Below are positions 1-21,800 of a stretch of DNA of 64,000 nt, in pieces. The DNA comes from Thalia democratica. Taxonomy: Eukaryota. The position numbers and the translations under genes are program-made. Position 1 is the stretch's first letter; each line of letters starts with the position of its first letter. Below the pieces are notes generated by a model. It ran no database searches. It was not told the DNA's origin and saw only the letters and a program-made list of their open reading frames with translations. The DNA is taken from positions 27,094,001 to 27,158,000 of the forward strand of contig OZ241834.1 of assembly GCA_965202585.1 (NCBI GenBank). The letters are read 5' to 3'.

Positions 1-1176
1 AAAAAATTTGATTATTTTCTTCTTTTTACCTGATAGTCCTTGTCTGAAAATTCAATGTTGTCTAGATCCATTTTTTCAAGAAATTCCAATCTGTGAAAAT
101 AAATTCTGTAAAAATCTGATACAATTACTAGATGAATTGAGCAAATGTTTTTGTATACTAAACACTTAAGTATCTAATAATTTTTAAGTGGCTATTTTTT
201 TAGTAAATTAGTTTTTTCAAAACATTTGAAAATAAATGAAAATAAGTTTATTAGAAATACATGATACAGTTAACCCTACTGTTTAATTTTTTTAATTTAG
301 AGTTATCACTTCGTCTGGAAAGTTCTATGTTGGTTTCAGATTATTTGTTTAAACATTTTTGTTATAATACATTTAACTTTCTTTATGAAACTCTGTAGTT
401 GTGTGTAAAGAAAAAAAAGTTTTTTATCCTAAAGAAAGGCACTATACTGTTATAAAAAAAACTTAAGCATTTTTACACGGATAATAACTAAAAACTTTTT
501 AAAATTTAACACCTACGTCTATATTCTTAAGATCGTATAAACCATATTGGTATCAATATTATACAAGATTAGTTACTTTTCTACGTCTTCCAAATTTTTT
601 TTTATTGAGCTATTTCTAATAGTTATCAAATGCAAAATTTTTTAGTTTTAATTTTTTATAAATAAAAATCTTTTACAGCTTATTAGAAAAACAGTTGAAA
701 ACCGGTTACCTTATTTCCAAAAAAGTACATATTTTGAGTTTATCTCGACCTACTGTACACTTTAAAGATATGAAATTTTATAAAGCTTAATTCAAGTACT
801 GTTAATATTTTACATAAAAACTGTACAAATTATACTTCAGCTTACTTACTGTACAAATACTTAGTTTCTTCTATTTTCTAACTTAGAAGCTATGGAGACT
901 TTTATTTTTAATATAAATTTCAATCAAAAATGTAGAAACAAAGTCACAGTTATTTATTTCTCACTTTCTTTAGTAAACTACTTCTTACTTTGAAGCTATG
1001 GAGACTTTTGTTTTTAATTTAAGTACTTTCATTAATTTCAATCAAAACAGTAGAAACCAAAAAACTTTTTTTTTCTCACTTTCCTTAGTAAACAGCTTTA
1101 TATAAATATAAATTAAAAATACTAATATAAATTTCAGTCAAAACAATAGAAACAAAATCACAGTCATTTTTCTCAC

Positions 1177-1295
1177 TTTCGCTTGGTGAACATTGTGTAG
1201 AGCTTGCAAACGAGCAATTCTGCTGCCCCGTCCCTCTGATACATCGTCCCCCTCACCAGGCACCACGGCAGCTTCATCTTCTCCTTCGCTATCAC
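1177..1295 (-). CDS. SPATA4: SPATA4-like exon 3
   Basis: ctcgcag|GTG ATA ... CGA AA|gtgaga; part of ORF-track entry 1173..1388. If the donor is not used the frame stops at 1173-1175. Confidence 0.8.
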
Positions 1296-3111
1296 CTGCG
1301 AGTTGTTGCATAAGTTAAGAATATATATATTGTTTATTGAACGACAAAAAAAAGCGCTCAAAATATTTTGTTCTAAGACTTGGTGCACGAAAAAACCTAG
1401 CTATTTGTTGTGCAAATTAACAAAATAAAACGTGATGAATGGTGTTAGTGAAGTATAAATGAGCAATGCCATAAACGAACTGTTCTAACATTAAAAAATT
1501 TTTATTGAAAGCTATCACTTTGTTATAGTATGAGTGTTATGCTTCATTTTTATGCATTTGACAAGTTTAATACACTACTGAAGAGATTACATGAAAATAG
1601 ATTTGTATTTGATTGTATTATTTTAAAGCTGCCCTTAAATAATCTAAGCATTGAAAAAAGTGTTAAACAGATTTATTGTAAAAAAGTTTTGAAATAAACT
1701 TTTTCAAGTAAACTTCAGCTAAGACATCATTATGGAAAAACTTAATCGTTTATAGTTTTACTAACTACTGAAATACTAAAATAAAGCAGTTATTATTATG
1801 AAAAAAATAAATACTATCATACATTTATAATTTATATTCTTTCAAAGAGATCGTTCTTTTATTTATATAGACACTATAATTCGTACTAAAAAAAACAGTA
1901 GAAAAAAAAGTTGTTAAATATTTTGTATTTAGATGCGAAAAACAAAGGCTTAAATAATCTGAGTTTTAATTTTAAGTTTAGCCAAAAAAGCAACTAAAAA
2001 GTTTAAATAATTCTTGTATAAAAACAACAAAGTAGGCTAAATCTTGATATAAATAAGTTTATACTAAAATAACAAAAAATTCATCCAAAATAGCTGAACA
2101 CATGTAGTGGTATGGGACACATTCAAAATCCACCCGCGTTCAAAATCCACCCGATCAAAATCCACCCAGCCAAATTTGAGAACCGCTTACCAATCGAGGG
2201 TAAGGGTTAAGGGTAACAGTGATAGTGAAAAAATAATAATAAATAAATTTAAAAATGTATGAAATAAATTAGTAAATAATAAAAATTTTAAAAAAATCGG
2301 GTGGATTTTGAGCGCAGATGGATTTTGATCGGGTGGATTTTGAACGCGGGTGGATTTTGATCGGGTGGATTTTGATCGGGTGGATTTTGATCTGGTGGAT
2401 TTTGAACGCGGGTGGATTTTGATAGTACAGCAGTGGTATATTCTTGAAAGAAACTACAAATTTAAGCAACATACTTTGATTACTTCAATTTAAAACAATT
2501 ATTCACCTCGAAGAGCGAAACCCAGTTGTAGAAAATGGCCTTGGAGCTGGTGCTGTCTACCAGGCACCCTGGGAAAATGTAGCTGGGGAAGGCTTTGGGG
2601 TGGTAGCGATTGAAAATTTCAGAAACTATCAGGCCACTGCAAAATTCTCTGCGAAAGAAATAAATTGAATTTTTCAAGTGCTTATGTTTTAAACTTTAAT
2701 CGTTTTGGATGATTTATTTTGATTACAGTTTTTGTTTGACTTCAAATAGTTTTAAACTTCCTACAAAAAAAAACTTAGATTTTTTTTTATTATCATAACA
2801 ATTAGCTTAAAAGTGTTGTTATAAAAATCACCGAACCAGGTTTTAAAGTAATATTATGGGGTTTTCTTTACAACTGCAATTAAAAATTTATGATTTTAAT
2901 TTGTATCTAAAATTCATTTTCAATTATACTCTGCTTATTTTAGACTACAAGCTTTATTTTCTCAAGTTCATTTCAACATTTTGCAATTTACAAACCTTTT
3001 TATGTTTTTTATTGGTTTGCTCAGCTCCAATGCTTGCAACCATTTTAGCACCTCTCTCGGTGTTTTTGTAGGCCTTCTTATTATATCAAATCTTTCTTTC
3101 TGCTTCGACAT
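1177..3111 (-). CDS. SPATA4: SPATA4-like CH-domain protein, exons 1-3 (3111-2996, 2648-2507, 1295-1177); 3' part presumably beyond the left window edge
   Basis: Spliced translation MSKQKERFDIIRRPTKTPREVLKWLQALELSKPIKNIKR/EFCSGLIVSEIFNRYHP...NWVSLFE/VIAKEKMKLPWCLVRGTMYQRDGAAELLVCKLYTMFTKR. All junctions are GT-AG and phase-consistent (2,0,2). Matches the remembered SPEF1/SPATA4 CH domain (LxWLQxLxL..RxFxxGxxxxEIF..Y.P..NW) and the SPATA4 block LPxxLxxGT..xxG..E.L...Y..LT.R. Confidence 0.8.
1340..1398 (+). repeat. ~110-bp dispersed repeat, copy 1 (5' part)
   Basis: aacgacaaaaaaaagcgctcaaaatattttgttctaagacttggtgcacgaaaaaacc. Confidence 0.7.
2114..2431. mobile_element. Foldback-type MITE with arms built of 15-17 bp tandem units (TCAAAATCCACCCG), in SPATA4 intron 2
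   Basis: 3 units at 2122-2167 face about 8 inverted units at 2297-2422. 8-bp direct repeat AGTGGTAT flanks both sides (2106-2113, 2432-2439). G-rich core at 2197-2215. Confidence 0.7.
2507..2648 (-). CDS. SPATA4: SPATA4-like exon 2
   Basis: tttcgcag|A GAA TTT ... GAG|gtgaat; part of ORF-track entry 2480..2677. Confidence 0.85.
2996..3111 (-). CDS. SPATA4: SPATA4-like exon 1 (38 codons + 2 nt)
   Basis: ATG at 3111, open to AG|gtttgt donor; not in the ORF track because it is short. Confidence 0.8.
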
Positions 3112-6059
3112 TTTAAAACAAACTTCAATTATTTAGACGAAAGCTTTGCTTGCTTTGGTATTTTAAACTTAGTAAAAACAATACTTGTACTTTTGATATA
3201 CTTTTTTTTTGCACTTGTATACAATACTTATATACATAGTAACTGTAACTACGTAAAAATCTGTTAATTACAGTTTAACTTTTTTAGTTAAAAATTAAAA
3301 AAATCGACGAACTTTTGGCTTAGATTTTTTCTATTAGTTTTGGTATTAATGACATACTGGGACGATTTAAGGAATTAATTATTATAACTTTAAATTAACT
3401 TGCATGTTTAAACAAGTTTACAAAAGTTTATTTTATACGTACTTAATTAAAAAAAAAGACTAACGTCGTATTTTATGATAAATGAAAAACATTTTTGTAT
3501 TTTTATTCAAGTATTCAGATTAAACTAATAACTTTAAGATAAGTTATCAATCTATGAAAATATTAAAAACTAAAAAGTAGCAAATGAACATTGATGAGAC
3601 AATTCTAAGTTCAGTTTATTACTTGACAGTGTGTTTCATGTCTATTAATTTCTGGTCTATGCATAAACGCATAAAAAAAAGCATTAAAAAATAAACTTTC
3701 ATTTCTAATTTGTCTCATTGATCATAGTAATACAGATTTTTATTAATATTTTTTTAATAAACTAAACATAAATTAGAACAAACGAATATTACATATAAAA
3801 TAGAAATATGATAATGACTTCTATTATAAATGACAGAATAGTTTATCATTGTTTAGCCAGTAAGTTCAGACAAAAAAGTAAGGGCTAGCAGTTTATAGCT
3901 GTTTTATAACAATATAAACTGTTTTTAGTTCTATCATTTTATATCAATGAATAATACAATCCTAAAATAGCGAGGAGCAATTTTTTTGGTCGGCGGGCCG
4001 GATTTATTAGAAAAACTCATGCCAAACTTTTAAAACATTTTTTCAAACCTGCGTAACTTTGAAAAATTGCACTATAAAATTAAATACTCTGCAAAACTCG
4101 TAAATGCTAAATTACAATGAAATGACCACTAAACTATTAACAAACTTTATCTTAATTGAACAAACTACAGAAGAAAAATGTAAAGTAAATCTTTTTCTGT
4201 ACTCGGCATAGTAAATTAATACTACTCTCGTGTTATTGTCATATCTTGTACCGCAAACTTTATCATATCCTATTTTTATTATACCAAACGTAGTACATTT
4301 TATTGTACTAGTTTTACCATAAGCAAAATCATCTGCCCATTTGCATAAGTTGATTTAAAGCTTTGTATAACTGAAACTTATTTTAGTTTTTAGTCCAGTA
4401 GTTTTTAAACAACTTGTGTTTGAGTTGTGTACCCGACTAACTTTTAAAATGATCAACCTGATAAACTACAAAATAATTTTAAATTATGTGGTTCTATTTA
4501 CTTTAAAAACAGTATATTTTCTTACTAATTAAAATTTCTGAAATCTTTAAATTAAAAGATTGGTAGATTACCAGCATACTATTCATACATAAAAGTTTTT
4601 ATGATAAGTAATCATAAAATGACCAAGCAATTTTTAAGCAGTAACTTAGACTTTTTTTACATTTATTTTCTAAATGTTGCTAACTTCCTTAAATGAAAAA
4701 CATATAATTAGTAATTGCTTATTCTAAATCATCAAAGCTTTAAAAACCTTACTAAATAAAATTTGGAATTTAACGGTTACTTTCATTTTTAGAGAAATTA
4801 AAAACAGCTATATAAATTGCTAACCCATTCATTTATGATATTTAATTTGTTACTACTTTAAAAATAGTAATAAAATTGTCATGTTTACTGGAATTTGATA
4901 GCTCCTTACATTTATGCTAATACCAGAAGTTTAAAAAAGTAGTTTTAGTTGATTGTGACACAATGTTTTTTTTTTTCCTTACTTCTGTGTTTTACTTTAA
5001 AGAAAGAATTTAGTTGAAGCAATAAAGCTAAGCATTTTACTTAAAAAAGGTAGAAGTAGTGAACTTTATTTATAAAAAAACGTTAGGCACAAAAATTAAC
5101 TCTGCAATGGTAGTTTATCGTAGTAACACTAAAAGTTCTCTATTTAAAGTTTAGTGAAATAATATCTTGACTATAAAATACTTAATTAGCTTTTGAAATT
5201 TTACTTTATAAACTCAATAATAGCAGTATTAAATGGAATAAAAAACACCAAATTCTAGAAATAAATACTTATTAAAAAAATTTTCAAGTATATTTTAAAT
5301 CTTTAAATAAGATTTAGGATGAATGGTTTGCAGGTAGTCTGTTTTTTAGATTGGAATGAGACAGGTTTAAGTAAATAAACAAATAAAAAATCGGTTAAAA
5401 GATCATTTTAATTAACTGTCTTAATTTTATAAATTAAGAAAACACTTAGAAAGAGATCTTTCGTTTATTAAAAATATTTTCAATTTTGCTGATAAATACA
5501 TTTGCTTAAGAGTGGTAACTTAGAGTATGTACTAAATGAGATTAATAATATATTCTGTACCTTAAAAACTATCAGTAAAAGTATAGCTTACTTGTTTCCT
5601 ACTTTACAAATTTAATAATTTTAATGGATACTAAAATTTGAAATACTTAAGTTTTATTTATATTCTTAAATCAATATTTTTAAATAAACTGGTATCTTTT
5701 TTTAATTTCAACTTTGTTGTAAAAATATGTTTATGTAGTATATAAATAACTGTATCAGTTGGATCTGAATTTAAAAAATTTAAAAACTTTTGAAATACTT
5801 TAATAATTCAATTTAAGTTAGCACTTTGGTTAAAAAAAATATATGTATGAAAATACTTAATTGCAAATAAATGTAACTGTAAGATTGTATGTTAAATTAC
5901 TAAGAATTTAGCCCATTTTTGATAGGAAGTTAGTATCAAAAAGGGTACTTGGCACACATTCAGTGGAATCAAGTTAAAGTTAAATTGTTACTAACAAGTT
6001 AAATTATTATTAAATCACTTTACTTACTAACAGGTATTTGTGTGCGATAAGTAATCGAG

Positions 6060-7481
6060 ATGGTTTCGGTCAGAAGAGGGAAAGCATCAAACGAAGCAGA
6101 CCTCCTTCAACAAAATGCTTTAATGAAAAAGATAAGGACTTTGATCCACTACGATGATGAACCGTACGCGTTTGAGTACGGCTTCGCTCCGAAACAAGTC
6201 GTTGAAAAGTTCAATGATTTTCGTAAAAAACACGGAAGCTTCTTTGCCACAGTGGAAGATCTTCTACGCAAGGGTGAAGGCTTGAAACACAAGTACAACT
6301 TCATTGACAGGAGCAAGAACATGCGGAGGCTGGAGGCGAGGTTTTCAGAAGAAGAAAGTTACGAGCAAGCGTGCACTGCAAATCGCAAGCTGGTCGTGTT
6401 CGCTCAGTCGAACGGAAATGATGACGTTGCTCGCGCCATCGAAGAAATTCTGATGAGCGCCGAACCGGCACCAGATTCTGGTCGCGAAAAAAGTCCCGTC
6501 AGTGAAACTTCTGGGAAAGGCTTATGCGGTTTGGAGAAGTTGGAAAAATTTATGAACTTTTCCTTCATGAACTCTCTGCTTAAATGCATGTTCAGCAAAG
6601 AGCAGCTGAAAGGTTACTTCAACAACATAAAGTTACAGAAACAACCAGAAAATTATCTAAACAGAAAAATCGCTTATGAAAATAACTTCGCGGAATGTTG
6701 TTCGCAATTGTTGAAAGATGTCAAGAGCTTAAGTAACGGTCGTAGTTTGAAGCCTGACGTTTTTTTGAATTGGGTAATAAATGTGGAAAAAATGTTTCTT
6801 GGTAGTAATAAACAGCTTAAAGTTAAAATGAAATTCTGGCTCAATTGCTTTCTGGTTGGATTGGACAAACACTTGGACAAGGAACGCGATGAAAATGCTA
6901 AAAAACTAAACAAATATTTTTCGGGAAAATTCCGTATTACAAGGGACTGTCTGACAACAGAACCATGTCTGAGTGTACCAAGTATACAGTTGTTTCGAAA
7001 GCTATCACTACCTTTGACTGAAAATAGCACACTTGCAGACATGGTCCAAAGATATCAAGTGCCAAAAAAGTTTTTAAAACGATGCGCCGCTTGCAAGGAA
7101 GCTTACCATCACGAAAACTCACGAAATGTGGTCGTGCAAAGATGCATTACGAGCCTTCCGCCAGTGCTGACCATCGAGCTGGAACGGTTTGATCAAAAGT
7201 ATAAACATCGTGTAAAAGATTCCAGGGATGTCAAGTTCCCGCTCTGCCTTTATTGGAAGAGAACGGACGTACTCGACGTGGAGAAATACAATTTGTACGC
7301 TGTCTTATACCATGTCGGGCCGGTGTCGAAGGAAGGACGTTACGTGGCGAGCTGTAAAGTTGAAGGTCGCTGGTATTTGTTCGATGATGAAAAGGTGAAT
7401 GAAATTGAAAGCTCTCGAGTTGAGAAGCCTCACGGAGATCACGACGCCTACATTTTGTTCTACTACAAATCTGATGAATGA
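6060..7481 (+). CDS. Ubiquitin-specific protease (peptidase C19)-like protein, predicted catalytically inactive; single coding exon, 473 aa
   Basis: Cys-box-like GLCGLEKLEKFMNFSFMNSLLKCM, finger CxxC (RCAAC), LPPVLTIELERF, V.FP..L, His-box-like YNLYAVLYHVG....GRYVA..K...WYLFDDEKV and terminal AYILFY. In-frame TAA at 6048 and a candidate acceptor (ctaacag, 6033) upstream support ATG 6060 as the start. Confidence 0.9.
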   Translation: MVSVRRGKASNEADLLQQNALMKKIRTLIHYDDEPYAFEYGFAPKQVVEKFNDFRKKHGSFFATVEDLLRKGEGLKHKYNFIDRSKNMRRLEARFSEEESYEQACTANRKLVVFAQSNGNDDVARAIEEILMSAEPAPDSGREKSPVSETSGKGLCGLEKLEKFMNFSFMNSLLKCMFSKEQLKGYFNNIKLQKQPENYLNRKIAYENNFAECCSQLLKDVKSLSNGRSLKPDVFLNWVINVEKMFLGSNKQLKVKMKFWLNCFLVGLDKHLDKERDENAKKLNKYFSGKFRITRDCLTTEPCLSVPSIQLFRKLSLPLTENSTLADMVQRYQVPKKFLKRCAACKEAYHHENSRNVVVQRCITSLPPVLTIELERFDQKYKHRVKDSRDVKFPLCLYWKRTDVLDVEKYNLYAVLYHVGPVSKEGRYVASCKVEGRWYLFDDEKVNEIESSRVEKPHGDHDAYILFYYKSDE

Positions 7482-7689
7482 AGCTTTATTTTTGACTGTT
7501 TATCTAATTGTTGAGTGCATTTGTGAGTTTTTATATAGTTTATAGATTTTTCTGTGTCGTTACGTTTGCATGAAAGCCTATTTTCTTATTTATTGCTTTG
7601 TTTATTTTGTTCTAAGTTATTAAATTCGTTATACAATAAAACAAATTTAAAAATGGTTAGTCTTAATTTATATACTTATTGTTTGTAGA

Positions 7690-7805
7690 ACAATAAAAAA
7701 TGAGCGCTCAAAGTATTTGGTTCTAAGACCTAGTGCACGAAAAAACTTTTCGGTTATCAAGTCATACACCACTTAGATATCTTTTAACGTCATGTCTACG
7801 ACAAT
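7690..7805 (+). repeat. ~110-bp dispersed repeat, copy 2
   Basis: gagcgctcaaagtatttggttctaagacctagtgcacgaaaaaacttttcggttatcaagtc...ttttaacgtcatgtc. Confidence 0.75.
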
Positions 7806-8051
7806 TAAACATCGAAAAGCTACATACTAATCGTTTATATGCTTATTATTATTTTTTTAGTATACTTTTCATCCAGAATTTAAGTCCGTAAATCTGTTTT
7901 ACAAAATTTGATAACTTATCAATAATATTTTAGCAATTAAAATTGTACAAGCTGTTTACCTTGTTGCTTACGATTAAAATAAGGCTTATAATGCAACATT
8001 TGAAAAGTTAACTTATTGTGTTATACTTTTATACCATCGTTCAAATAATGC

Positions 8052-8135
8052 CCATCTAAGATTAAACTTGTCTTGCATGGAATTAGAGAAAGATCATTCT
8101 CTAATACCATGCAAGACAAATTCAATCTTGAATGG
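8052..8135. other. Near-perfect intergenic hairpin
   Basis: 8068-8090 pairs with 8097-8119 (22 of 23 bp), 6-nt loop, with further imperfect lower stem. Confidence 0.85.
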
Positions 8136-9426
8136 CAATAAATAAATAAGTTGTAAGATTTAATAAGTTTTAATAAAGCTTTTATGCCACAAATATTGTG
8201 CGGAATTAAGCATTGTACTTTGTTTGATTTAAAGGTATAAAGGTGACTATGAGACCTAAAATATGAAGAGCAAATCTTTGGATTTAATAGGTTCTTTACG
8301 GAAGGCACAAACTCGAAAGATTTTATTTTCAAGTTATTTACACTAAATTTTATTAAAATGTTCCTTTCATTGTTGCCAAAAAACCTGTAACCCTGTAAAA
8401 TCTAAAAATATTCCAAGACTATTTTAATTTTTAAGAATTCTAAAAAGCGTAACTAAAACAAAAGCGTATTTTCGCGAGAGCTGACTGTACATCCGATATT
8501 TTAACTTATATTTTATTTAAATCTTTTTATTTAAAACATATACAATAAGTAAAACTAAACCATTTTTTCAGTTATCAAATTTTTATTATCTTATTAATAT
8601 ACCTTTAATTAAAAAAGTTTCGTATACACATTACAGCACTTGTTTAATTTGAAAGAGCTAGTAAGTTATACCTAAAAATTTACTATTTTAGAATGATTCA
8701 AAATGTCCTAGTTTTAAAACAGAATTTTATACATCAAAACAATTCTTAAAGCTTTTAGTCATTTTTAAATATAAAAAATTGTAGCTAAGAAGTATTTTAT
8801 ACTTTTTAAAATTAATTATTAATGATGACTTGCTAGAAAGACTTGACAATAAAATATCAAAAATGTATAAACTAATTCGTACAATTACAGGTTGAAATAT
8901 ATAATGTTTTATTTGTCATAAACCACCGTTCAAAGTGTATATAAATAGTTACGAAGAGTGACAATAACAATTACAAAATAAAACAGCAAAAAATGTATAA
9001 AGAAGTTGTTTAATTTATAATTTCATTCATTAAACAGAAAAATTTTTACTGATAAAAACAGAGTAAGGGTAGTAACCGTACAGTTTGCAAAAAATGAAAA
9101 GTTTTGAATATAAATTAAAAATTTGCACGGCTGAGACATTCAGATATCACAAAAAAATAAAGAGATACACGTTAACGGCAAATTCAAACAAAAAATAATA
9201 AAGAATTCAGTTTCGGGTTTTCGACTGAAAGACGCGAAAACAAATGACTTTTCAGGTAATTGAAACAAAAAGCTATTTATGTTATAATTATAATTGTAAA
9301 AACGAAAAACTTAAAAGCGAATTTATTTTTAGATGCGTCAACAACATCATGCCTCGTTATATAAAAATCACAAAAAAATTGAAAAATATTAAGTTTTATT
9401 TGCATTCGGGCTCGCACTTAAATATG

Positions 9427-9654
9427 GGTGGCTTGAAAAACCTGCAAAAGTTTGCATATTTGATGAGTCAGCTTTTTTTATTCTTTTCAAGTTGTTTTTT
9501 AATTCAATGAACACTTTTTTACTTGATTTATATGTTATATTAAGGTTAGGTGGGTTAGAGATAAATGTACAGATAAAAAAATAATTTAAAGAGTTTTATG
9601 AAAAATTATTGACTCAGCAAATATGCAAAATGTTTGCAGGTTTTTCAAGCTACC
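9427..9654. mobile_element. MITE with ~45-bp TIRs just downstream of the CDC27 stop
   Basis: ggtggcttgaaaaacctgcaaaagtttgcatatttgatgagtca (9427-9470) is the near reverse complement of 9611-9654; central ggttaggtgggttag. Confidence 0.75.
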
Positions 9655-9758
9655 CTCAAATACGAGAGACGCGAGAGAACTCAAACAATCAAATACGAGA
9701 GAACTAAATAAGAGAGAGAGCTCGGTGGCGCCACTCAGCGGATGGCAGATATGCAGTT

Positions 9759-9890
9759 TCAAGCGTGAGTGGTCTGGTGCGCGTTCTCTATCGCCTTCTT
9801 CAGGAAATTGTTGGAACCGCTGGGGTCGAGGTCGAGCGCTTTCGAGAAACTGTTCGTCGCCAGACCGTTCTGTCCTATTTTTAAATAAAC
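9759..9890 (-). CDS. CDC27: CDC27 exon 19 (terminal coding exon)
   Basis: gcacag|GTT TAT TTA AAA ATA GGA ...; VYLKIGQNGLATNSFSKALDLDPSGSNNFLKKAIENAHQTTHA, TGA at 9761-9759. Confidence 0.92.
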   Translation of the reverse strand, partial: VYLKIGQNGLATNSFSKALDLDPSGSNNFLKKAIENAHQTTHA

Positions 9891-12800
9891 CTGTGCGAGA
9901 GAATATATTTTTTTGTACAGGTTGTTGGAATATCAAGCTCAGATTACAAGCAAAAATGGCATACAAATTATAGATATTGTTGAAATATTTAAAGCTTTAA
10001 ATTTAAAAAGCAAACGAAAGAGGCAAAAAAATGTTTAGTTAAACTATCTCCTCTACAGGTATTAAGCAATGTTTTTCCTACTTTTTAAGTCTTTTTTTAA
10101 ATTAATATTAAACAGTTATTATAAAAAGAATATACATATTGATTATAAATATCTATTTTTTTGTTAAATACTATTGTTAAATTAACTTATTACATGTATT
10201 TAAAATTTACTAAACCTATGATAAAATGCAGATCCTAGTAAAAAAAAGTGCAGATCAGTTGAACACTTAAACTTAGTTCCAAAAACTATTTGAAACTTAA
10301 AAACAAACCATTTATACAACAACTCACCTTTCCTAGTAAGAAATGGACGGTGCTCTCGGTGGGGGCGATGTTGATCAGTTGCTTGAGCTCGTTCAAGGCG
10401 CCCTCGAAGTTGTTCAGCGCGTACAGAATGGTGGACTTGGTGAACTTGCACAGCGCGTTCTTCGGCTCCACCCGCATCGCCACGTCCAATAATTCCAACG
10501 CGAGTTCCAACTTGTTCTGGTTCTGATAGGCCACCGCTGTTGACAAGAAATTTGAATGAAGTTGTAATGAAATTAACATAAACTGTTACAGAGTTTGTTA
10601 CTCGACAAATGTTTCACGTTTGCACGATGATCACAAGTTATTAACTAATAACTAGTATTATTTAATTTAAAAGGATTAGATTTAAATTTTAATTTGTTCT
10701 GGTTCTGGTATGCCACCGCTGTTGAGAAGAATTTAGGATAAAATTGTAACGAAATTAAAAACAAACTGTTATTGAGTTTATTACTTGACAAATGCTTCAC
10801 GTTTGCAAACGATGACCACAAGTTATTAACTAATAACTAGTATTATTTATTTAAAACATGATTAAATTTAAATTTCAATTTGTTCTGTTTTGGTATGTCA
10901 CAGCTGTGAGTTGGAAGGTCGTTAATGAAGACATAACTATGAACCTATACAATTTTTAATTTAATTCATCATAATCGAAACAGGTAGCTACAATATTTTA
11001 GTTGTAGATTAATACAAAATAAGCTGGGCTCAGGGTAGGTTGTAAATCACAACGTGTTGAAAAATAAAATGAAAGAACAATTTTAAAACGGTCTGATGAG
11101 AAATCTAATAACAATAGCTGGACTTGTAGAACTTTATTGACACAATTAAAATATCACTTCTAAATTGTCACGGTAAGGATAAAAACTTTCTGCCTACCAA
11201 AGTAAAAAAATGGATGAATTATTATTACCTGTAAAAATACTTGAAAAAGTATCTAAAAGTTTTAATTATCATTACATGTAGAACTATGTTAAGATTATTT
11301 GTATGTTGTTGTTAAATAAAACAGTAAAATTATACTTCTGGCTATCACTGTTAAAAAAAATAGTTTTAGAGTTTGTTTAATAGTATTTGAAAAAAACTAC
11401 TACAAATCAACTAAAAAAGTGTGACAGTTTATTGTAATTTAAATAAATTTGAGTACAAGACAAAAATAAAAGTAAAAAGTTTAAAATTTAAATTAATTGG
11501 ACTGTGAACTTTGAAAGTTAAGTAAAGCATATAAAATTAATTTGGAAAAATCTATTCATAGTTTAAAAAGTTCATAGTTTAGTAAAAGCTAAAATGATGT
11601 GATTTCAAGAAACGTTTTCTTATAAAACTATAAAAGAATGTAACTATAAACAGGGTTGCCACTCATTTTACAAAAAAAAAATTTCCAGGTTTTCCAAATT
11701 TCTTCCAGGTTTTTAAAAGTATACTTTTTTGGGTATATTTATATTTTAAAGTTAAGTTAAAGGTGAAACTGTGTTAAAACTGTAAAAAAAAAAATTGAAA
11801 AAATACTTTTAAGTACTGTAAAGCTACTTTATATTTATTTTTTAATAAAAAAAACATTTTGATGATAACAAATTTTTATTATTTATATGATAGATATTTT
11901 GAGTCAAATCGAAATTTTGCTACTAAATATGTGAAAAATGTCAAAATTCTAGGTTTTTTTAGTGATTTTTGTTTAAAATTCCAGGTTTTGCCAGGTTTCC
12001 AGGTAAAGTGGCAACCCTGTATAAAACTAGGAAATATTCTAATTTAATTATTTCAAAAGGCAGATCTTTTAAAAGCAAATTTCTCCGAACAACTTACAAC
12101 ATTTTTTTATAAAAATTGCAATTTATTATATCTACATGCCCTTTAGCTAAAAAGGTCATTTTAATGTAGTTTTATTAAATATAAAAACTTTGCTCTAGCT
12201 ATATTAAAACAATAATTATCTACTCTTAGGAATTTTAAAAGTACTTTATTAATCTGATTTTTTTTGGGAAAAAAATTATCACAAGTTTACTATTAGTGTA
12301 ATATATATAAAGTATAACAGCTTTAAAACAAAACTGTCATTCAAGTAAAACACTTTTCTTTAATGCAACTAAATACAGAATAAAATTGCACATTTATGCA
12401 ACCGAATGTGAATAAAAATTCCAAAAGCTTACAAGTACTGTTGTGCAGACCGCAACAATAAATTGGTGAAATTTCTATCTTAATTAGAGGTTTGTGAATT
12501 GCTAAATTGCTAGTAACATACTGAAACTGTTAATAGAAACACGTTAGATCTGGAGAAAATGACAATTAAAGTTTAAAAACTACACATTATATGTATGAGT
12601 TGCACGTATTTTCCATAAAACATTTAATTATCGTTAGTTACAAAGTTTAAAACAGCTTCTGATAAAATCAACAAGTTATTCTGTTATTTAAACAAACAAA
12701 ACTAATTTCACGGTTAAATAATACTAATAAGCAGAGAGAAAAATAATAAAAACACAAAATAATTAAAAATAACAATATTATTTGCTTAAGTAATCTTTGA

Positions 12801-15800
12801 TTATTGTCGTTTTATATTTTGTTGTGAAAAAATGTGTAACTTTTTGCACAAAGCATTATAAGAAAAACAAAAGTTTTCTGTGCACGACTTTAGTAAAAGT
12901 GCCCCAGAGAAAATAAAAACGAATTTAAAACATTTAAAACAAAATAAAACCGCATATGTGTTTGAAATGTAACACTTTCTATTTCGCAATCAGGAAACAA
13001 GTTGGAATTTGAAAAAATATATATAAAGGTAAATTTTTACAACATACAACCGTATAACAGTTATATGTATATATATGAACGATTTATGTTTCTTGTCAGA
13101 AATTTATTTCTCAATTACTTAAGGTTCTACCTAAATACAGTTAACAGTATGGTTCTTAAAAGAAAATAAATTAAAGCCATGAAAAAAAATTCTGTACAAT
13201 TTTGGACAAAAAAATTTTAATCTAAGAGAGCTAATAAAAATATTGCCTAATTGCTATTTAAAAAATAGCTAATTAAAATTATAAACAAATTTTACAGTTT
13301 TTAAAAGGTAAAACAAAATACTTAAATTTTGCATTATTATTTTTATCACAGTATAAAATTTAATTAAAAAATTTTTTTTTTTTCAAGTAACAATGAATTT
13401 TAAAATTATTCATATTATTAAAAAACACTAAAAGTTTGGTTAAAAAAAATAATAAAGAAATTTATTATTATAAAATATATGCTTTGAATAAATAAAATTA
13501 ACATTTGAGCAAGAGCTCTTTATCATAAGATTAATTTCTTAAACTTATTCTTTATGCAAAAAAAAAAACAGACTTCTTGTTTAAAGTGATAGAAAAAATT
13601 TCAAAATACATGTTCATTAAAAAGATCTATTTTTAAATTTAAAATTAACTTATTCTGGAATGAAAAGTGTTTTAAAATCTACCTGTAAAAACTGTATAAG
13701 TTGGTAAAACTTTTATCATAATATCATAAAGATACATAAAAAAATTGTATACTTTGTATACTTATAACCAGCATTTTACAAAAAAAAAAACACACAACTA
13801 GTTATGTAAAGGTTTTACATAAGTTAAAATAAAATTGACAAGGAAAATATTATTTAAAGTTTGCTCAACTACAAGTTAAGTATAATAAACTTGTAGTAAA
13901 ATAAGATTTTTTGTTTGCATTAATAGAAAAACTTTTTTGTTCAAAAAATTCGATTTAAAATCTATTGAAACTTCTAAAAACAAATTTATTTACATCACAA
14001 AAACATATACATTACAAATTAAACAAAGAACAATTGTGCTTTTGGCTAAACTTTACTCGAAATAAGAAAATTCTTTAATTGTAATAAAATAAAAAATGGT
14101 AATAAACAAAAACTAAATTTTATAGAAATTTAACTAATTATTAAAATTCTTTATAACTTAAGGTATCAAATAACAAACATATAATCAGTTTGATTTTTGC
14201 TTATAAATGTTTTTTTAGTAATCAATTTTGATTCTGTAAAAGTTATGAAAAAAGCATTTCATAATACTACTTTTTAAATTATAATAAAAAACTTATGAAG
14301 TTTTAGTCAAATCTATTAAAGCATTACAAAAGTTTATAGAAAAAAAATTCATTTACAAATTTTAATCAAAGAGCTTTGTTGACAAATATTGCATATGAAT
14401 CAAAATCAAAACTCGTGAGTAATTCTTTTTCTTTTCTGTGTGAAGTTTTCACTTGAGAGTAACTAAAGTTTAAACTACCTTTTATTATCAGTATTAGCTA
14501 CAATAACACATTATTAATCATACCATTAAAAATTATCACATCAGTCAAAAAATTTTAACATGTAAAAGAGGTTTTGCAAAAACAAGGCATTACATTTTGT
14601 GTTTCAAACTTCTGCATTTTTAAACATAACAATTCATTATAATACTGTATGCAAGAGTTATTGTGCGGAAACGACAACCAAATATGATTTGAATTACTAA
14701 TAGAATAAATTCTGTTTTTGTAAAGTTGAATATTTACAGTATGTTGTAGAAATATTAAGAAAAGTCTTACATATAAACTCTAGTCGAAAAACATTAGAAC
14801 ACAACTACAAACCTAATTTCTGACAATTACCAACACCTTTTCACCTTGACCCATAAAACATACACCATGCATGATGATTTACTAAGTATTTAATACATGT
14901 TCCTTATAAAAGAAGATTATCTTTAAATTGTCATCAACCGTTATAAAATATTTTCAAAAATAGTTTTATGAACGAATGATTGAATACTTTTATTACTTAG
15001 TGTTTAATACAGCTTTACTACAAAGTCGTTAGTATTATACACTTCTGAAAAAACACTAGATAAGTAGAGAGTATAAGGAAAATACATGTATAGCCTTTTT
15101 CATTTTCATGCCATACAGAAGAAGACAAAACTGAAAGTTTTAAAAACTCATCATACATAATTTTAACCTTTTGTACGAACAATTGAAAGGAAACACCGAC
15201 TTTTAATTTAGAAACTATGGTTCAACTTATCTTAAATTTTGAAAAACCAAAACAAATAAAAAACAAACCTTTATGGCACATGAGAGTAGGACTGCTACCG
15301 TGTATGTCGAGAGCCTTGTCCAGAAACTGTTCTGCTTTGCTGAAATCTTCTGATTTCGTGTGGATCACGCTCATTCCGTACCTACGGTGTTAGAATTATA
15401 ATTGTTAATTTAATTTTGTGTAGAATCATAATTAATAATAATTATATTATTAAGTCAGTTTTGAAAAATTATCTAAAAAGTTATTTTAAAATCAGAAGCA
15501 TATTTTAGACCACTTTTATTAAAAATAGTAGAGTTTGTAAATGTAATTTTGACATGAAAAAGCATTTTAAAGATTTACTTATTATTACAGTAGTTTTTGA
15601 TTAAATAATATCATACTTGTTTTTAACATGTACATTAAACTAGTAAAAAGTTCAGCTTTGAAGTATTACTAAACTAATACATAGTAAACCGAAACTAAAA
15701 CCCTTACTAGGCTTAATAGTTGTAATTTTTACTACAAATACACCTTACACTTTTCGCACAAAATACCATTCCAGCTTCCAAATATTGTAAATATGGCACA

Positions 15801-18800
15801 AAACTAGAAAATTTCGATAGTTAACGGTTTTTTGGCACCCCTTCAAATTTTTTGAACTTATAAACAAACAACCCTCACCAGGCCTTGTAGTTGTTAAAGT
15901 GATTTTTGTTCAAAATTCCTGTTTTCCTCAGATTTTTTCAAGATTTCTCAAATTCCATGTTCTTCAAGGTTATTTCTGCCTAAAATGTCAAATTCCAGGT
16001 TGTTCCAGGATTTTTAGCACCCCTAGAAGTATTACTAATTTTAACTTTCAAAAAAAAACAAGCTTCACCATGTTTTGTAGTTGTTTAGGTGATTTATGTT
16101 CAAAATTTCAGTTTTTTCCAGCTTTTGATTTATTTGTATTTCTTCAAATTTAAGGTTTTTCAAGGCTTTTTTTTGCCGGAATTGCCTAACTCTCGGTTTT
16201 CCAGGTTTGTTAGCAGCCCTTTGAAGTACCACTAAACTTATAATAAAAACAAAACAATCCTCACCAGGCCTTGTAGTTGTTGGTGTCCACCCTGCTGGCG
16301 GTCTCGAAGGCGGCCATGGCGCGGTCGTGGTCCTCAACCACGCGGTACTCGTGGCCCAGTAGGGTGTACGCGTACGTGTGGTGCGGGTCCAATTGCACCG
16401 CCCTCTTCAGGAACTTTATGGCGGTGGGGTTTTCCCTTTGTAATGAAAAGCAGTTGCCGATGACGCACCACGTCTGTTTTTGAATAAATGTTAAATCTAG
16501 CGGTTGTTGTTGAGTGTTTAACATAAGAAATCGCATCTGATATTTTTTTCGAAACACATTTAAATAATAAATGAGCTAAAAATATATTTATCTATAATAA
16601 AAAGTCTCTGGCCCATAAAGTAAAATTCAAAAAACTACAGTAATGTAGTTATTTTTATTAACCTTAAAAACTTATCAAATAATGTTTAAATTAAAAAATT
16701 AATGAAATATATTTGTTAATTAAATTTAAGTAACAACTAAAAACTTAAAATGAGAATTATTTTAAACCAACTAACAATACCAAGTGAAGATCAGGAAAGT
16801 AGTAATCAAGTAAGCTGATGAGCAAAATAAAACTTGAATTACTACTGAAAACTTTTTTATCAGTCTTATTGAAAATATGAGAACTATTATAGTTCAACAA
16901 TTAACAAAATACCTCGGCAGAGTTAATTATTGCAAACATTTTACTATTCTAAAACATTAAAAAACTAAACAGACATATATAAAAAATAAACCAGATATGA
17001 AAATAATTTTATAAGCAAATAATACCTCAGCGGAGTGCGGGTCGGTATCGTGGAGCTGAGTGGCGAGAGTGGACAGCGCGTACTGTTCGTTCAACTGCCA
17101 CAAGCAGGAACTGTAGACCGCCATCCCCTCCAAGTGGTACGGATGCTTGCTCCTCAGCTCTTCAAAGTGCTTCTTCGACTGTTTATATTTAATCATTCGT
17201 AATTGTTATTTACAGTTATTTAATCTATTTTTTTAATTTGTTAAGTTTTTGTTTGAAATATTTAACAAAAAAATATTTTGCTCCTCAGCTCTACAAAGTG
17301 CTTCTTTGACTGTTTTGTTTGTTTGAATTAATAGTTTTTTTTTTAAGCTGTTTAATATTTTTTTATTATAAAATTATTGATTTTATACAATTGATTAACT
17401 TTTGTCTACAGTCTTTACAAAAAAAAATAGCTAGAAAGACTCGGCTAATTATATTTGTTTGTTTAAATTAATTGTTTTTTTGTTAGTTGTTTAACACTTT
17501 TTTTATTATAAAATTGCTGATTTTCTACAACTCATAATCTGTTGTACACAACCTTTACATAAAACTAATCAAAAAGGTTCGACTTTTTATATCTGTTTGT
17601 TTTTTCAGCTCTTCAAAGTGCTTCTTAGACTATGTTTGTATTTGTTTGTTTATGTTAGTTTTTTTTTGTATATATTTAATTTATTAATAATAAATTGCTG
17701 ATTGTGTGCAACTGATTAAATTTTTTCTACAGTCTTTACAAAATAAAAATAGCTAGAAAGGCAGGCTAATTATACTTGCTTGTTTTATTTAATTGTTTTT
17801 TGATGTATTAAATTAACCACTGTTGGCAAATTACTGTGTAAAACAAAAATAAAACACAAAAAAAAATTTTTATAGTTTCTTTTTACTATTAACTTTATTC
17901 AAGTAAAAATTTTACATGTATTTTAGTTCATTACTTGTTTAATGTTTAAAATTTCATGACTAATAAAAAATTACTGGTTATTTTTCAAAAGCTATTTTTA
18001 TCCTCAAAATATCTCAGTTTTATCAACACTTGTGAAAACAATATAAACTGTCAGATTCTTTACAACCGTGTAATTTTGATGAAATTAAACAGTTTGTCTT
18101 GAAGGTTTACAAAATACGTTTTTAAATGAAAAGTTTTATTTTAAACGCTTGTTTATTTTGGTATTTATAAATAATTTAAAACTGCATTAAAATAATACAC
18201 CTTAAAAACATACTCAATACTAATAAACTATTTTACTCTAACTTATTTTGAAATATACTTCATGAAAAAAAAAATAAATATATCAAAAAAATATTGAACT
18301 TTTTTTGTATAGTACATAAGTTTGCAGTGAAAAACTAGTTTGAAAAACATAGTTTTTTAATAAAGCAACTTTATTGTTGATTAATTACTCAAAATTTATT
18401 AACTAAAGACGTAAGGTTCTTAATTTCATGAAGTTTTTTAAGAAAAAATATCATATAAAGGTAAAACAAAACACCAGTCAAAAATTAAATACTACATAAT
18501 AATATCTCAGGTATACAATTTCAATCTGATCAAATACGTTTAAGAGATAATTTAAAGAGATAAAATAAACTTTTCAAAAGCTCATTTTGTACAAACTACT
18601 GTAAAATATTATGTTGAATATTATATTATATTATGTTGACATTTAAGATGAAAGTATGTGCGTTTAGTTATTTGGTCCTTAAAATTAAAATTTTTATGTA
18701 ATATAGACAAAATAAAAATAACCCTATTTCGATAATACTCATATATAAATATACATTTCAAAACTTAGACATAGTTTAGTTAATTGCTTTATCAAATTAA

Positions 18801-21800
18801 TTTTTTTCGATTATCTTTAATATTAGCAAAGAAAGTTTAGGAGTAAAATTTTTGAAATGACACAATCTAAATTTTTCAATGTAACTTGATTTTTTCAGAT
18901 TTTTAAACTGTTTAAGATATGTAAAACTACTTTATAAACAAAACAAATAACTTCAAACAATTTAAGATCCTACACAATTCTTGTGATACACAATACTTTA
19001 CATACAACTCAGAAACAAGTGATAGAGATTGAAACAAGCTTATTAATAAAATGTCTTCATTGCCTATAATTTCAAATTATCCGATTTTTGAAAACGAGGT
19101 ATTCAATTAAAATAAATCATAAAATATTTGATTCTCTGATGGTTTACCTACTTAAGTTCATTTAAAGTGCATTTTTGGTAGTTTATACTTATCTAGATAA
19201 ACTTTATTTTTCATGAAGTTTACCAAACAACTTTTCATTCAATTAAAAAGTCTTTTAAAATACCAACTACTAAATTAAACTACTTGAAACTTCAATTAGA
19301 TTAAAATACATTGCTTGTGGAAATGACTTCAAATTTAAACCAACTGGGAAGCAGAAGTGTATACAAAAATACAGTTTTAATATTTTAAAATTCTTAATAA
19401 TATCATAAAACCTATAATATTATTTCATTACTTTTAACACAGATAAAAAATTTAAATAAATAGTAATATAGATTCTTTGTGGTTAAATTTAAACCAACTG
19501 GGAAGCAGAAGTGTATACAAAAATACAGTTTTAATATTTTAAAATTCTTAATAATATTATTTCATTACTTTTAACACAGATAAAAAATTTAAATAAATAG
19601 TAATATAGATTCTTTGTGGTTAAATAAACCTTAAAACAAAAGTACAATTTAAACAATAACTTGTATTTTTGGTAACACCTATAGAAAAGTTTTTGAATGT
19701 TATACAGTTAAAAGACTTAAAATGGGAAATATTGTAACTTAATTTGTATGATTTTTCTTTACTATAAATACTAATACTTTCCAAAAAAACATGAAAGTTA
19801 AAACCTTTTTTGACCATTAAAAAAGCCTGCATTTACTATTTTGACCTTCAGTATCTATAACTGTTTGTGTAAATTTTTTTGTAAACTTATATTTAGTTTT
19901 AAATTAAAAATTATAAAAACTACAATGTTTTTTTAAATTGTAAAAAAATCATTTCTTTGTGAATATTCTACAAGTTTTTGATTTTTAAACACCTTTATAA
20001 ACAACTATTGTGTTTTTTTAAAATTTATAAGAACGGCAGTGTAAGATAAGCCGTTCTTTAAAATCCAATAACAAGAACTTAACGGTATAACAATTTATAA
20101 GACAATGAGTAAAAAAAGCCCAGTTAGTTTAATACATGTAAACATTTTCTTAAACTGAACCTTAAAGCAAACGAAAAAAACCAGACTTTAAAGCCCGTAA
20201 AAGTAAATTGTTTGCCTTGGCAAAGCTCTTACTTATTAAAAACCTATCAAATACCAAGCTTGCTTGCATTTTATTCATTCTCACCTTGGCGAAGCTGTTG
20301 ATTTCGAAGTAGGCGGTGGCTTTGAGCAGTATGACGTAATAGTGGTCCTGGTACTTGTCAGGTATGTCCTGCAGGTAGTCCAGCACCTTCTTGCACTCGA
20401 AGCGGGACATGGCGCGGGTGGCGTGCGCTATCTGCCGCATTATCAGCATCATCGAGTCTGTAAACAATGTAATAATTAAGTACAAAAAATAAAAAATAAC
20501 TTCCAAGAAACTGTTTACAGTTGACCACCAAGAATATATTTATCAGCATCATCGAGTCTGTTTGATTAAATAATAAACATAAAAAAACGTAAAAAAATCA
20601 AAAATAACTTCCAAGAAACTGTTCACAGTTGACCACCGTAGAAAATAATTTTTTTTAAGCAAAACACAACTTTGATTATTAATTAAGTGCGCTATCTGCC
20701 GCATTATCAGCATCATCGAGTCTGTTTGGTTTGAGAATAGAATAAAATGCAAATAAAAATTGTTTGAAAACAGCCGCTCGATATCAGAGAAACTGAGCAC
20801 ATTTGATCACAGAAGAAATTTTTTGTGCAAACTAATACATTAATTCTTTGTTGAGTACTTTTGTGTAGAAAAACACTTTTACCCACATTTTAAGAAAAAT
20901 GATAGTTTATAAACTTTTTTTTTTAAATAGAACTACTTCTTTCATCTATTTTGAACACGCACTCTTGCAAAGCAAAATTAATTTTACCAACTATTTAAGA
21001 AGCGATGGTTTATAAAAACTCTATTTTATTTTTAGTGAAAAACATCAAGTACAGAATTACAAAGAAAAAAGTAAATTGTTTAAAAAAGAATAATTTTTTA
21101 TCATTAATCAATTATACTATGTTTGGAATAAACTCACCTAAACAAGGTTTTTTGCAAGAGGTTCCGGATTCAGTGCTTGATTTCGAGTCGAGGTCAGTAT
21201 CGACTGAAAAAACAGTATTCTTTTTAATTTAGCAATCTAAATATAGAAAAAAATATTTAATTCCTTGGAATAAAAAAAATTAACAAAATTAAAAATTTTA
21301 TGATTTTTTTTAATTTGATGGTAATTTCACAGCTTGACCGTTAGTTTTTTATTAAAGAAACTTTTGGAAAAAAATTAATCTGTTAAAGCGTTAAAAATTT
21401 AAATAAAGAAGAAAAATTAATTTTGCTTAAAATTAACTTTTTTACAAGCAATATAGTCATGCTTCTAATCAACTTGAACTAAAAATCAGAAAACTCCACC
21501 AAACATGGGCTCCCTACATTAATTATTAAACAAAATAAATATTTCAAGGCCGTTTCCACGGGGCGTACCAACCTAGTTTTCGCTTTTTGCTTCTGATGGT
21601 AAACAGCACCTTACTAAATTGCACTCCTGGAGAAAATATTCGCGTGTGGCAGTCAGAATCAGTTAAGGTTGAAAGAAAAAAAAAACGACACCCAAAAATA
21701 TTTATTTACAAAAAAATAAGACCTATTAGGCAACCTAATCAAGAATATATATTTTTTTAAATCCTAATAAGTTACCATAAAATGTATCCATCTTAACAAG

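Follow-up and report, generated by a model that had tools for sequence, protein, structure and literature searches.

A probable pseudo-deubiquitinase from a lineage-specific family of intronless USP genes in Thalia democratica

Introduction

Can a gene from the family of ubiquitin-specific proteases (USPs) that has lost its catalytic cysteine and histidine still be maintained by selection, and if so, in what role? This question is raised by a single-exon open reading frame (ORF) at positions 6060–7481 (+) of a 64,000-nucleotide stretch of Thalia democratica DNA, hereafter referred to as the window. The window sits on a chromosome-scale contig (C10) of a very AT-rich, 802-Mb genome. The evidence presented below favors the view that the ORF is a selectively maintained pseudo-deubiquitinase, namely a USP-fold paralogue within a lineage-specific, intronless family of tunicate type. 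Since the gene is conserved despite a dead active site, its product would act non-catalytically.

Gene Structure

The ORF consists of 473 codons followed by a TGA stop codon. An earlier note, made from the sequence of the window, had described this frame as intact, and its translation indeed runs uninterrupted to the stop codon. An in-frame TAA is located at 6048–6050, nine bases 5' of the ATG, and fixes the start codon. The G+C content is 38% in the ORF region and about 25% in its flanks. A DNA contig of 345 bases from a public run (X1) coincides with positions 6241–6585 with 0 differences and spans codon 168; thus, the Ser codon at this position is not an assembly slip. The features of the gene are as follows:

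6060–7481 (+): putative pseudo-USP gene, intact single-exon ORF of 473 aa plus stop (translation; the orthologue P0162 shares its start and end)
6093–6458 (+): family-specific N-terminal domain, residues 12–133 (AlphaFold2 predicted local distance difference test (pLDDT) about 90; conservation in paralogues)
6543–6554 (+): residues 162–165 (EKFM), three-residue insertion before the Cys box, with Lys at the oxyanion-Asn position (alignment to the orthologue and all paralogues)
6546–7463 (+): USP domain (UCH, PF00443), residues 163–468 (Pfam, phmmer and Foldseek)
6561–6563 (+): codon 168, Ser (TCC) in place of the catalytic Cys; the orthologue also encodes Ser, with TCG (alignments)
6807–6836 (+): residues 250–259 (NKQLKVKMKF), the 'QQDAxEF' box with its acidic residues changed to Lys in this lineage only; NEQHEDAMDF in the orthologue (alignment)
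7320–7478 (+): residues 421–473, His-box/palm segment with Arg427, Asp442 and the clade-specific EKPHGDHD loop; strongest constraint (ratio of non-synonymous to synonymous substitution rates, dN/dS)
7338–7340 (+): codon 427, Arg (CGT) in place of the catalytic His; the orthologue also encodes Arg, with CGC (alignments)
7383–7388 (+): Asp442–Asp443 of the FDD motif, the retained third and fourth catalytic-site positions (alignment)

USP Fold and State of the Catalytic Site

A search against Pfam revealed a match to UCH (PF00443) over residues 163–468 with an E-value of 3e-36 and 125.8 bits (cut-off 23.9), which covered profile positions 5–254 of 254. The AlphaFold2 model, built from a 62-sequence alignment, had a mean pLDDT of 81.6. 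A Foldseek search of the PDB returned USP2, USP12, USP46 and USP8 as the top matches (E about 1e-21, TM-score by target 0.72–0.79), and the thumb–palm–fingers fold is accordingly seen in the model.

The catalytic site was examined using phmmer alignments with the catalytic domains of USP8 (8xpn, 2gfo) and USP15, in which NFSFMNS stands opposite NTCYMNS/NTCFMNS and GRY opposite GHY. These alignments identify Ser168 (TCC, 6561) with the catalytic Cys site and Arg427 (CGT, 7338) with the catalytic His site. Both assignments agree with the earlier note, as does the observation that each codon is one base off TGC and CAT, respectively. The Cys of the NTC[FY]MNS motif of active USPs is absent, and the orthologue likewise has Ser at this position. 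Of the 62 USPs in the alignment, at least 90% have His in the column of Arg427. The FDD motif, which had been reported as retained, is present at residues 441–443, and the third and fourth critical Asp/Asn positions are kept as D442 and D443. The position five residues before the Cys site, which we take to be that of the oxyanion Asn as in USP7, is occupied by Lys in the window protein and by Arg in the orthologue. In addition, the three residues inserted directly before the Cys box of the window protein are absent from the orthologue and from all paralogues.

The possibility that Cys176, or a residue near it, or His418 occupies a catalytic position, which had been considered in the earlier note, was checked by alignment and was not borne out. 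Cys176 is the LQC residue and His418 belongs to the YxLxAVxxHxG motif. Both are (near-)invariant in catalytically intact USPs as well; thus, they are not compensatory and the loss call stands. Without a thiol nucleophile, a general base and the oxyanion Asn, thiol-protease chemistry is not credible, and the window protein is presumably unable to hydrolyse ubiquitin. The combination expected of a pseudo-deubiquitinase is found, with the catalytic residues gone and the fold kept.

Orthologue and Distribution

A search of 5.8 billion clustered proteins revealed one close relative, P0001 (61% identical), from the Tara Oceans marine metagenome. Two further alleles belong to its 90%-identity cluster, namely P0163 and the full-length protein P0162 (463 aa, encoded by a contig of 3.2 kb). 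The amino acid identity of the orthologue to the window protein is 61–64%. All three metagenome sequences read NSSFINS and GRY, and synonymous changes separate the two species in the codons for Ser (TCC versus TCG) and Arg (CGT versus CGC). At the DNA level, the window and the metagenome locus show 77% column identity over the coding region, with the 3' flank included. The alignment extends into the upstream flank for about 450 bp (74%) and into the downstream flank for about 250 bp, and this agreement on both sides indicates that the loci are orthologous.

No further members of the clade with Ser and Arg at the two catalytic positions (S/R clade) were found in an exhaustive profile-free search of 1.84 billion representatives. 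A scan of metagenome contigs with the S/R-clade alignment returned only generic USPs, in short pieces with no more than 48% identity. The second-highest score in the representative search belonged to P0003, which was rejected as a specific relative, being a gopher USP17-like tandem array that was scored over 10 repeats with 25% identity per domain. Outside this genome, only marine-metagenome sequences such as P0004 were found to combine the N-terminal domain with the USP domain.

Selection and Constraint

By the Nei–Gojobori method, comparison of the window ORF with the full-length orthologue gave a dN/dS of 0.38 (bootstrap 0.27–0.50) at a dS of 0.67, and values of 0.14–0.30 were obtained among the three metagenome alleles. 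This estimate had been proposed in the earlier note as a check; it is not near 1, and the gene is kept and not decaying. Intact-triad pairs of the family, namely the orthologous pair of L006 in this genome and P0004 in the metagenome, and tandem paralogues, gave dN/dS values of 0.41–0.49. This similarity indicates that the window copy is as constrained as its live relatives. All indels between the window ORF and the orthologue are multiples of three. A neutral simulation that used the local base composition and allowed only substitutions left 1.3% of the ORFs open at 0.05 substitutions per site; the fraction fell to 0.05% at 0.1, and at 0.2 no ORF remained open. Taken together, the shared Ser and Arg, the dN/dS of 0.38, the in-frame indels and the simulation reveal purifying selection after the catalytic loss. 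A test for lineage acceleration based on polarised amino acid changes (28 in the window lineage versus 18 in the metagenome lineage) was not significant (p = 0.18).

The constraint is distributed unevenly along the protein. Residues 421–473, which include the BL2 loop, the His box, the FDD motif and the last strands, are 92% identical to those of the orthologue (48/52) with a dN/dS of 0.06, as opposed to 53–56% identity in the N-terminal domain, the thumb and the fingers. The least constrained region is a part of the fingers (residues 321–380, dN/dS 0.73). An intact-triad control pair showed the opposite pattern, with identities of 78% in the N-terminal domain, 73% in the thumb, 50% in the fingers and 65% in the His-box segment. 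Thus, the constraint has shifted onto the C-terminal His-box/palm segment.

Family of Intronless USP Genes and Phylogeny

A six-frame search of the genome with the window protein yielded at least 53 matches. Most of them were single long ORFs of 420–720 aa, and many copies contained stops. Nearly all copies consist of an N-terminal domain of about 125 aa and a C-terminal USP domain. Cys and His are kept in 14 of the 17 other family ORFs that were aligned over both boxes (NTC/NAC/NSC and GHY/GHW/HY/HF). The exceptions that lack the Cys/His pair are the window gene, its metagenome orthologue and a paralogue on C5 (L022). The latter (G000:C5:62130673-62132424; L022:1505-3373:+) is an intact ORF of 623 aa with SMSCINS as the Cys box and GKY as the His box; the protein database yielded no orthologue of it.

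The family evolves by birth and death. About a dozen single-ORF USP genes of ~500 aa, intact and broken ones mixed, form a tandem cluster at G000:C2:12440000-12692000, and the pairs compared within it are 84–97% identical with dN/dS values of 0.41–0.67. The appearance of unselected copies is shown by two decayed copies of the window gene itself. One of them, L003 (G000:C4:61325072-61325505), covers residues 1–145 only at 75% identity and contains two stops and one frameshift. The other, L034, from a metagenome contig of a related organism, has stops, frameshifts and GLY at the His box.

Every family member that was fetched, including intact paralogues and tandem arrays, is one uninterrupted ORF. 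Intronlessness is therefore a family trait and is uninformative on the origin of the window copy. No intron-containing parent was identified among the fetched family members, and no poly(A) tract was found at the 3' end of the window gene. The locus is old and is present in another species as well. The earlier note had called the gene a lineage-specific pseudo-deubiquitinase that was possibly retro-derived. Its lineage specificity, the absence of the catalytic Cys and His and purifying selection on it were upheld; the retro origin was not, since the whole family is intronless.

A maximum-likelihood tree of the USP domains placed the window and metagenome sequences in one monophyletic group (100/99), sister (97/90) to domain 1 of L002, which has an intact triad. 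L002 (G000:C7:12978482-12980620; L002:1405-3543:+) is a 713-aa ORF with two complete tandem USP domains and no family N-terminal domain. It is the closest intact-triad relative of the window gene, and its two domains fall in different subclades. L022, with its Ser/Lys combination, was placed together with intact-triad genes in a separate, well-supported clade. Because L022 and the S/R clade sit apart, catalytic residues were lost at least twice in the family. In the S/R clade, the loss of Cys, His and the oxyanion Asn predates the split of the two species.

N-Terminal Domain

In the model (pLDDT about 90), the N-terminal domain starts with a helix and a short strand, after which a strand–helix–helix unit occurs twice. 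It is conserved across the paralogues, and all family-invariant residues are kept in the window protein. A Pfam search gave no match to this domain, and a feature search of the protein atlas gave no usable one. Structural comparisons stayed below significance: the best Foldseek match in the PDB was TraY of the F relaxosome (E 0.08), the best match in the AlphaFold database clusters was DUF1564 (E 0.1, with CopG/Arc/HicB-like entries lower), and the VIA wide search reached a Z-score of 4.4 at best, with atlas TM-scores of 0.40–0.55 (RepB regulator, HicB). As a lead only, these entries (TraY, CopG/Arc, HicB and RepB regulator) hint that the domain might be ribbon–helix–helix-like, perhaps in tandem. 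Such a fold would be unusual in an animal protein, if true.

Possible Function and Alternative Explanations

Several observations weigh against the proposed maintenance of a dead USP. The window lineage has lost the first zinc-ribbon CxxC in comparison with the orthologue, and the acidic residues of its QQD box have become Lys (NKQLKVKMKF versus NEQHEDAMDF). Together with the insertion in the Cys loop, these changes could reflect ongoing relaxation. The ORF differences listed between the public runs and the window, both within the species and from a near one, comprise at least 15 non-synonymous and at least 7 synonymous ones, with no stops among them, and the rough ratio of non-synonymous to synonymous polymorphism (pN/pS) among those listed is about 0.5, so the constraint on the window ORF is moderate. 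Finally, the only public runs that contain the stretch are DNA shotgun data, and there is thus no transcript support. The even coverage of the gene and of intergenic DNA in the three runs, with two haplotypes, is what identifies them as DNA shotgun and makes them uninformative on expression.

These points could be accommodated if the window gene were a young copy without a function that is turning into a pseudogene, its intact frame being a matter of luck and its catalytic substitutions the first signs of decay. The family does undergo birth and death with many broken copies, a dN/dS of 0.38 is not low, non-synonymous changes form the majority of the polymorphisms listed, and the degenerative-looking changes and the lack of RNA support would also fit. 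However, this explanation appears improbable to us, as the orthologue, at a dS of 0.67, shares Ser and Arg with the window protein and keeps its full-length frame intact, and its alleles give a dN/dS of 0.14–0.30. Under neutrality, no more than 0.05% of the ORFs would stay open at 0.1 substitutions per site, the indels are all in frame, the overall dN/dS matches that of intact-triad pairs and the C-terminal block has a dN/dS of 0.06. Even less probable is a surviving hydrolase activity through non-canonical residues, with Ser168 as the nucleophile or with another Cys or His. A Ser can, in chemical terms, act as a nucleophile, and Asp442 is kept; moreover, deubiquitinase activity has been claimed for USP39 and USP52 despite their missing triads, and the residual activity of these classic pseudo-USPs (USP39, PAN2/USP52) is disputed (PMC10919355). 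Against such an activity, Arg stands in place of the general-base His and Lys in place of the oxyanion Asn, Cys176 and His418 are structural residues also present in active USPs, and the alignments revealed no new clade-specific Cys or His near the active site. An assembly or sequencing artefact at codons 168 and 427 is effectively refuted by the exact DNA contig over codon 168 and by three independent metagenome assemblies with the same residues.

With regard to the role of a maintained pseudo-deubiquitinase, two non-catalytic functions were considered. In USPs, the BL2 loop/His-box region grips the ubiquitin tail, and the acidic QQD box contacts this basic tail. It is conceivable, but in our opinion rather doubtful, that the dead USP domain serves as a ubiquitin reader or shield which binds ubiquitin or ubiquitinated substrates and protects or sequesters them. 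The full USP fold is confidently predicted and matches ubiquitin-bound USP2 and USP46, including the USP2 C276S–ubiquitin complex (5xve), and the BL2-loop/His-box region is the most conserved one. In addition, a laboratory exchange of Cys for Ala in Ubp8 and USP4 tightens ubiquitin binding by as much as about 150-fold, with the chains protected (PMC6172466). However, the fingers that hold the ubiquitin body are the least constrained part (dN/dS 0.73, residues 321–380) and have lost their first CxxC, and the acidic QQD box is replaced by Lys in this species. Arg427 also adjoins the Gly-Gly channel, and an Arg in the active site, as in Cys-to-Arg mutants, can abolish ubiquitin binding, presumably by filling this channel (PMC6172466).

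We therefore slightly prefer, and tentatively propose, an adaptor or competitor role, because Arg427 lies beside the Gly-Gly channel, the fingers are the least constrained region, the acidic box is lost and the N-domain invariants are kept. The N-terminal domain and the conserved palm surface around Arg427 would engage the same partners as the active relatives do, and these partners would be bound without deubiquitination. A predicted complex of residues 150–473 with the divergent ubiquitin of the Ub-L40 fusion (L037:1495-1722) scored 0.00, which is evidence neither way.

A further-reaching scenario, which we regard as unlikely, is that the dead USP gained a new function, with constraint moved from the thumb, the N-terminal domain and the active-site residues to a new palm surface formed by Arg427 and the EKPHGDHD loop. 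In this scenario, the N-terminal domain might be a single-chain tandem ribbon–helix–helix, and the whole family would be a rapidly evolving system of conflict or recognition from which pseudo-enzymes emerged at least twice (the window gene and the Ser/Lys paralogue on C5).

Flanking Sequences and Other Features

The following non-coding features were found on both sides of the gene:

5953–5984 (+): upstream non-coding block, 30/32 bases identical to the metagenome orthologue locus (alignment)
6024–6040 (+): CTACTAACAG block followed by GT, putative 3' splice acceptor or spliced-leader trans-splice acceptor (conserved at the orthologous locus)
7626–7697 (+): two AATAAA signals, 7626–7631 and 7692–7697, in the 3' flank alignable with the orthologue (sequence)

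The conserved TACTAACAG acceptor is located 26 nt upstream of the ATG. Given spliced-leader trans-splicing, the block at 6024–6040 is likely to be the acceptor for a 5' untranslated region of 26 nt, and the block at 5953–5984 may be a regulatory or outron element. An Rfam scan of positions 1–12000 of the window revealed no RNA family. An antisense ORF at 6674–7042 (122 aa) was taken to be a chance occurrence.

Very high-copy repeats are located directly downstream of the gene at 7703–7772 and 8049–8500. The summed contig depth was about 97,000 at 7722–7918 versus about 100 over the ORF. Many loose ends were observed at 7703–7727 and 7771–7772, as well as inverted joints around 8049–8220. Over positions 2600–8500, heterozygosity appears to be high in the individual represented by the runs X1 and X2, whose two haplotypes are each covered about 40x. 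X3, labelled as a second organism, differed by about 2–9% per contig, and many of its variants were common to one haplotype. An intron-rich neighbor occupies positions 10200–20500 on the minus strand; its TPR-rich exons, examined by eye in the ORF translations, resemble CDC27/APC3.

Ubiquitin genes were also located in the genome (G000). Polyubiquitin arrays are found at C9:6904097-6913111, C9:9592115-9601077, C10:34337131-34350859 and C5:69855123-69858875. Each ~480-bp unit matches ubiquitin only from about residue 34–36 to residue 76, which suggests that every repeat may be split by an intron near codon 35. The sole intronless full ubiquitin that was found belongs to the somewhat divergent Ub-L40 fusion at C7:32055639.

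Significance and Comparison with Known Systems

Pseudo-deubiquitinases are a recognised small class, few members of which have a clear evolutionary history. In the present case, active ancestors, a dead descendant, its orthologue and decayed sisters can be compared, which amounts to a natural experiment in the re-use of an enzyme fold, in that the loss of Cys and His in the window gene was followed by continued selection and relocated constraint. The gene itself would be an annotation-level finding, unsurprising to specialists. The parts of note are the uncharacterised N-terminal domain, the recurrent catalytic loss within one family and the expanded, unreported family of USPs in a relative of marine chordate type; no paper describing this family emerged when the literature was searched for an expansion of USPs in tunicates.

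Like the window protein, USP39/Sad1 has a USP fold without the catalytic Cys and His and is selected for a non-catalytic role (PMC10919355). However, USP39 is ancient and universal in eukaryotes, with a ZnF-UBP domain at its N-terminus and Asp in place of the catalytic Cys, whereas the window protein is a paralogue of recent, lineage-specific origin that has Ser and Arg at the catalytic positions and whose N-terminal domain is unrelated. The sequence did not reveal any specific relationship to USP39, and the best PDB matches were USP8, USP15 and USP2. PAN2/USP52 is similar in that an inactive-looking USP domain is used as a structural module. In PAN2 this domain lies between the WD40 and exonuclease domains and is conserved across eukaryotes; the window protein consists of the N-terminal domain and the USP domain only and is restricted in distribution. 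Beyond the shared fold, the window protein appears to be unrelated to USP39 or PAN2.

The best sequence and structure matches are domains of the USP2/USP8/USP21 type (by sequence, the USP2/USP8/USP15 type). The GxCGLxNLGNTC-type Cys box, the zinc-ribbon fingers and the His box of these enzymes are present in the active paralogues of the family. USP2, USP8 and USP21 are active, in contrast to the window protein, in which Ser replaces the Cys, Arg the His and Lys the oxyanion Asn, and enzymes of this type are encoded by multi-exon genes in animals. Mammalian USP17/DUB-3 genes are intronless, tandemly amplified and fast-evolving, with many pseudogenes. Their resemblance to the window family is one of analogy only, with generic USP similarity (25% identity), and in USP17 the USP domain is N-terminal and the family N-terminal domain is absent. 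This generic similarity and the different architecture indicate that the two expansions were independent.

The laboratory trap mutants USP2 C276S, Ubp8 C146A and USP4 C311A belong to the same class of nucleophile substitution and bind ubiquitin without cleaving it. In the window protein, His and the oxyanion Asn are replaced as well; the basic residues in their place may obstruct the tail channel. Unlike the changes in the trap mutants, the substitution in the window protein is natural and evolutionarily fixed.

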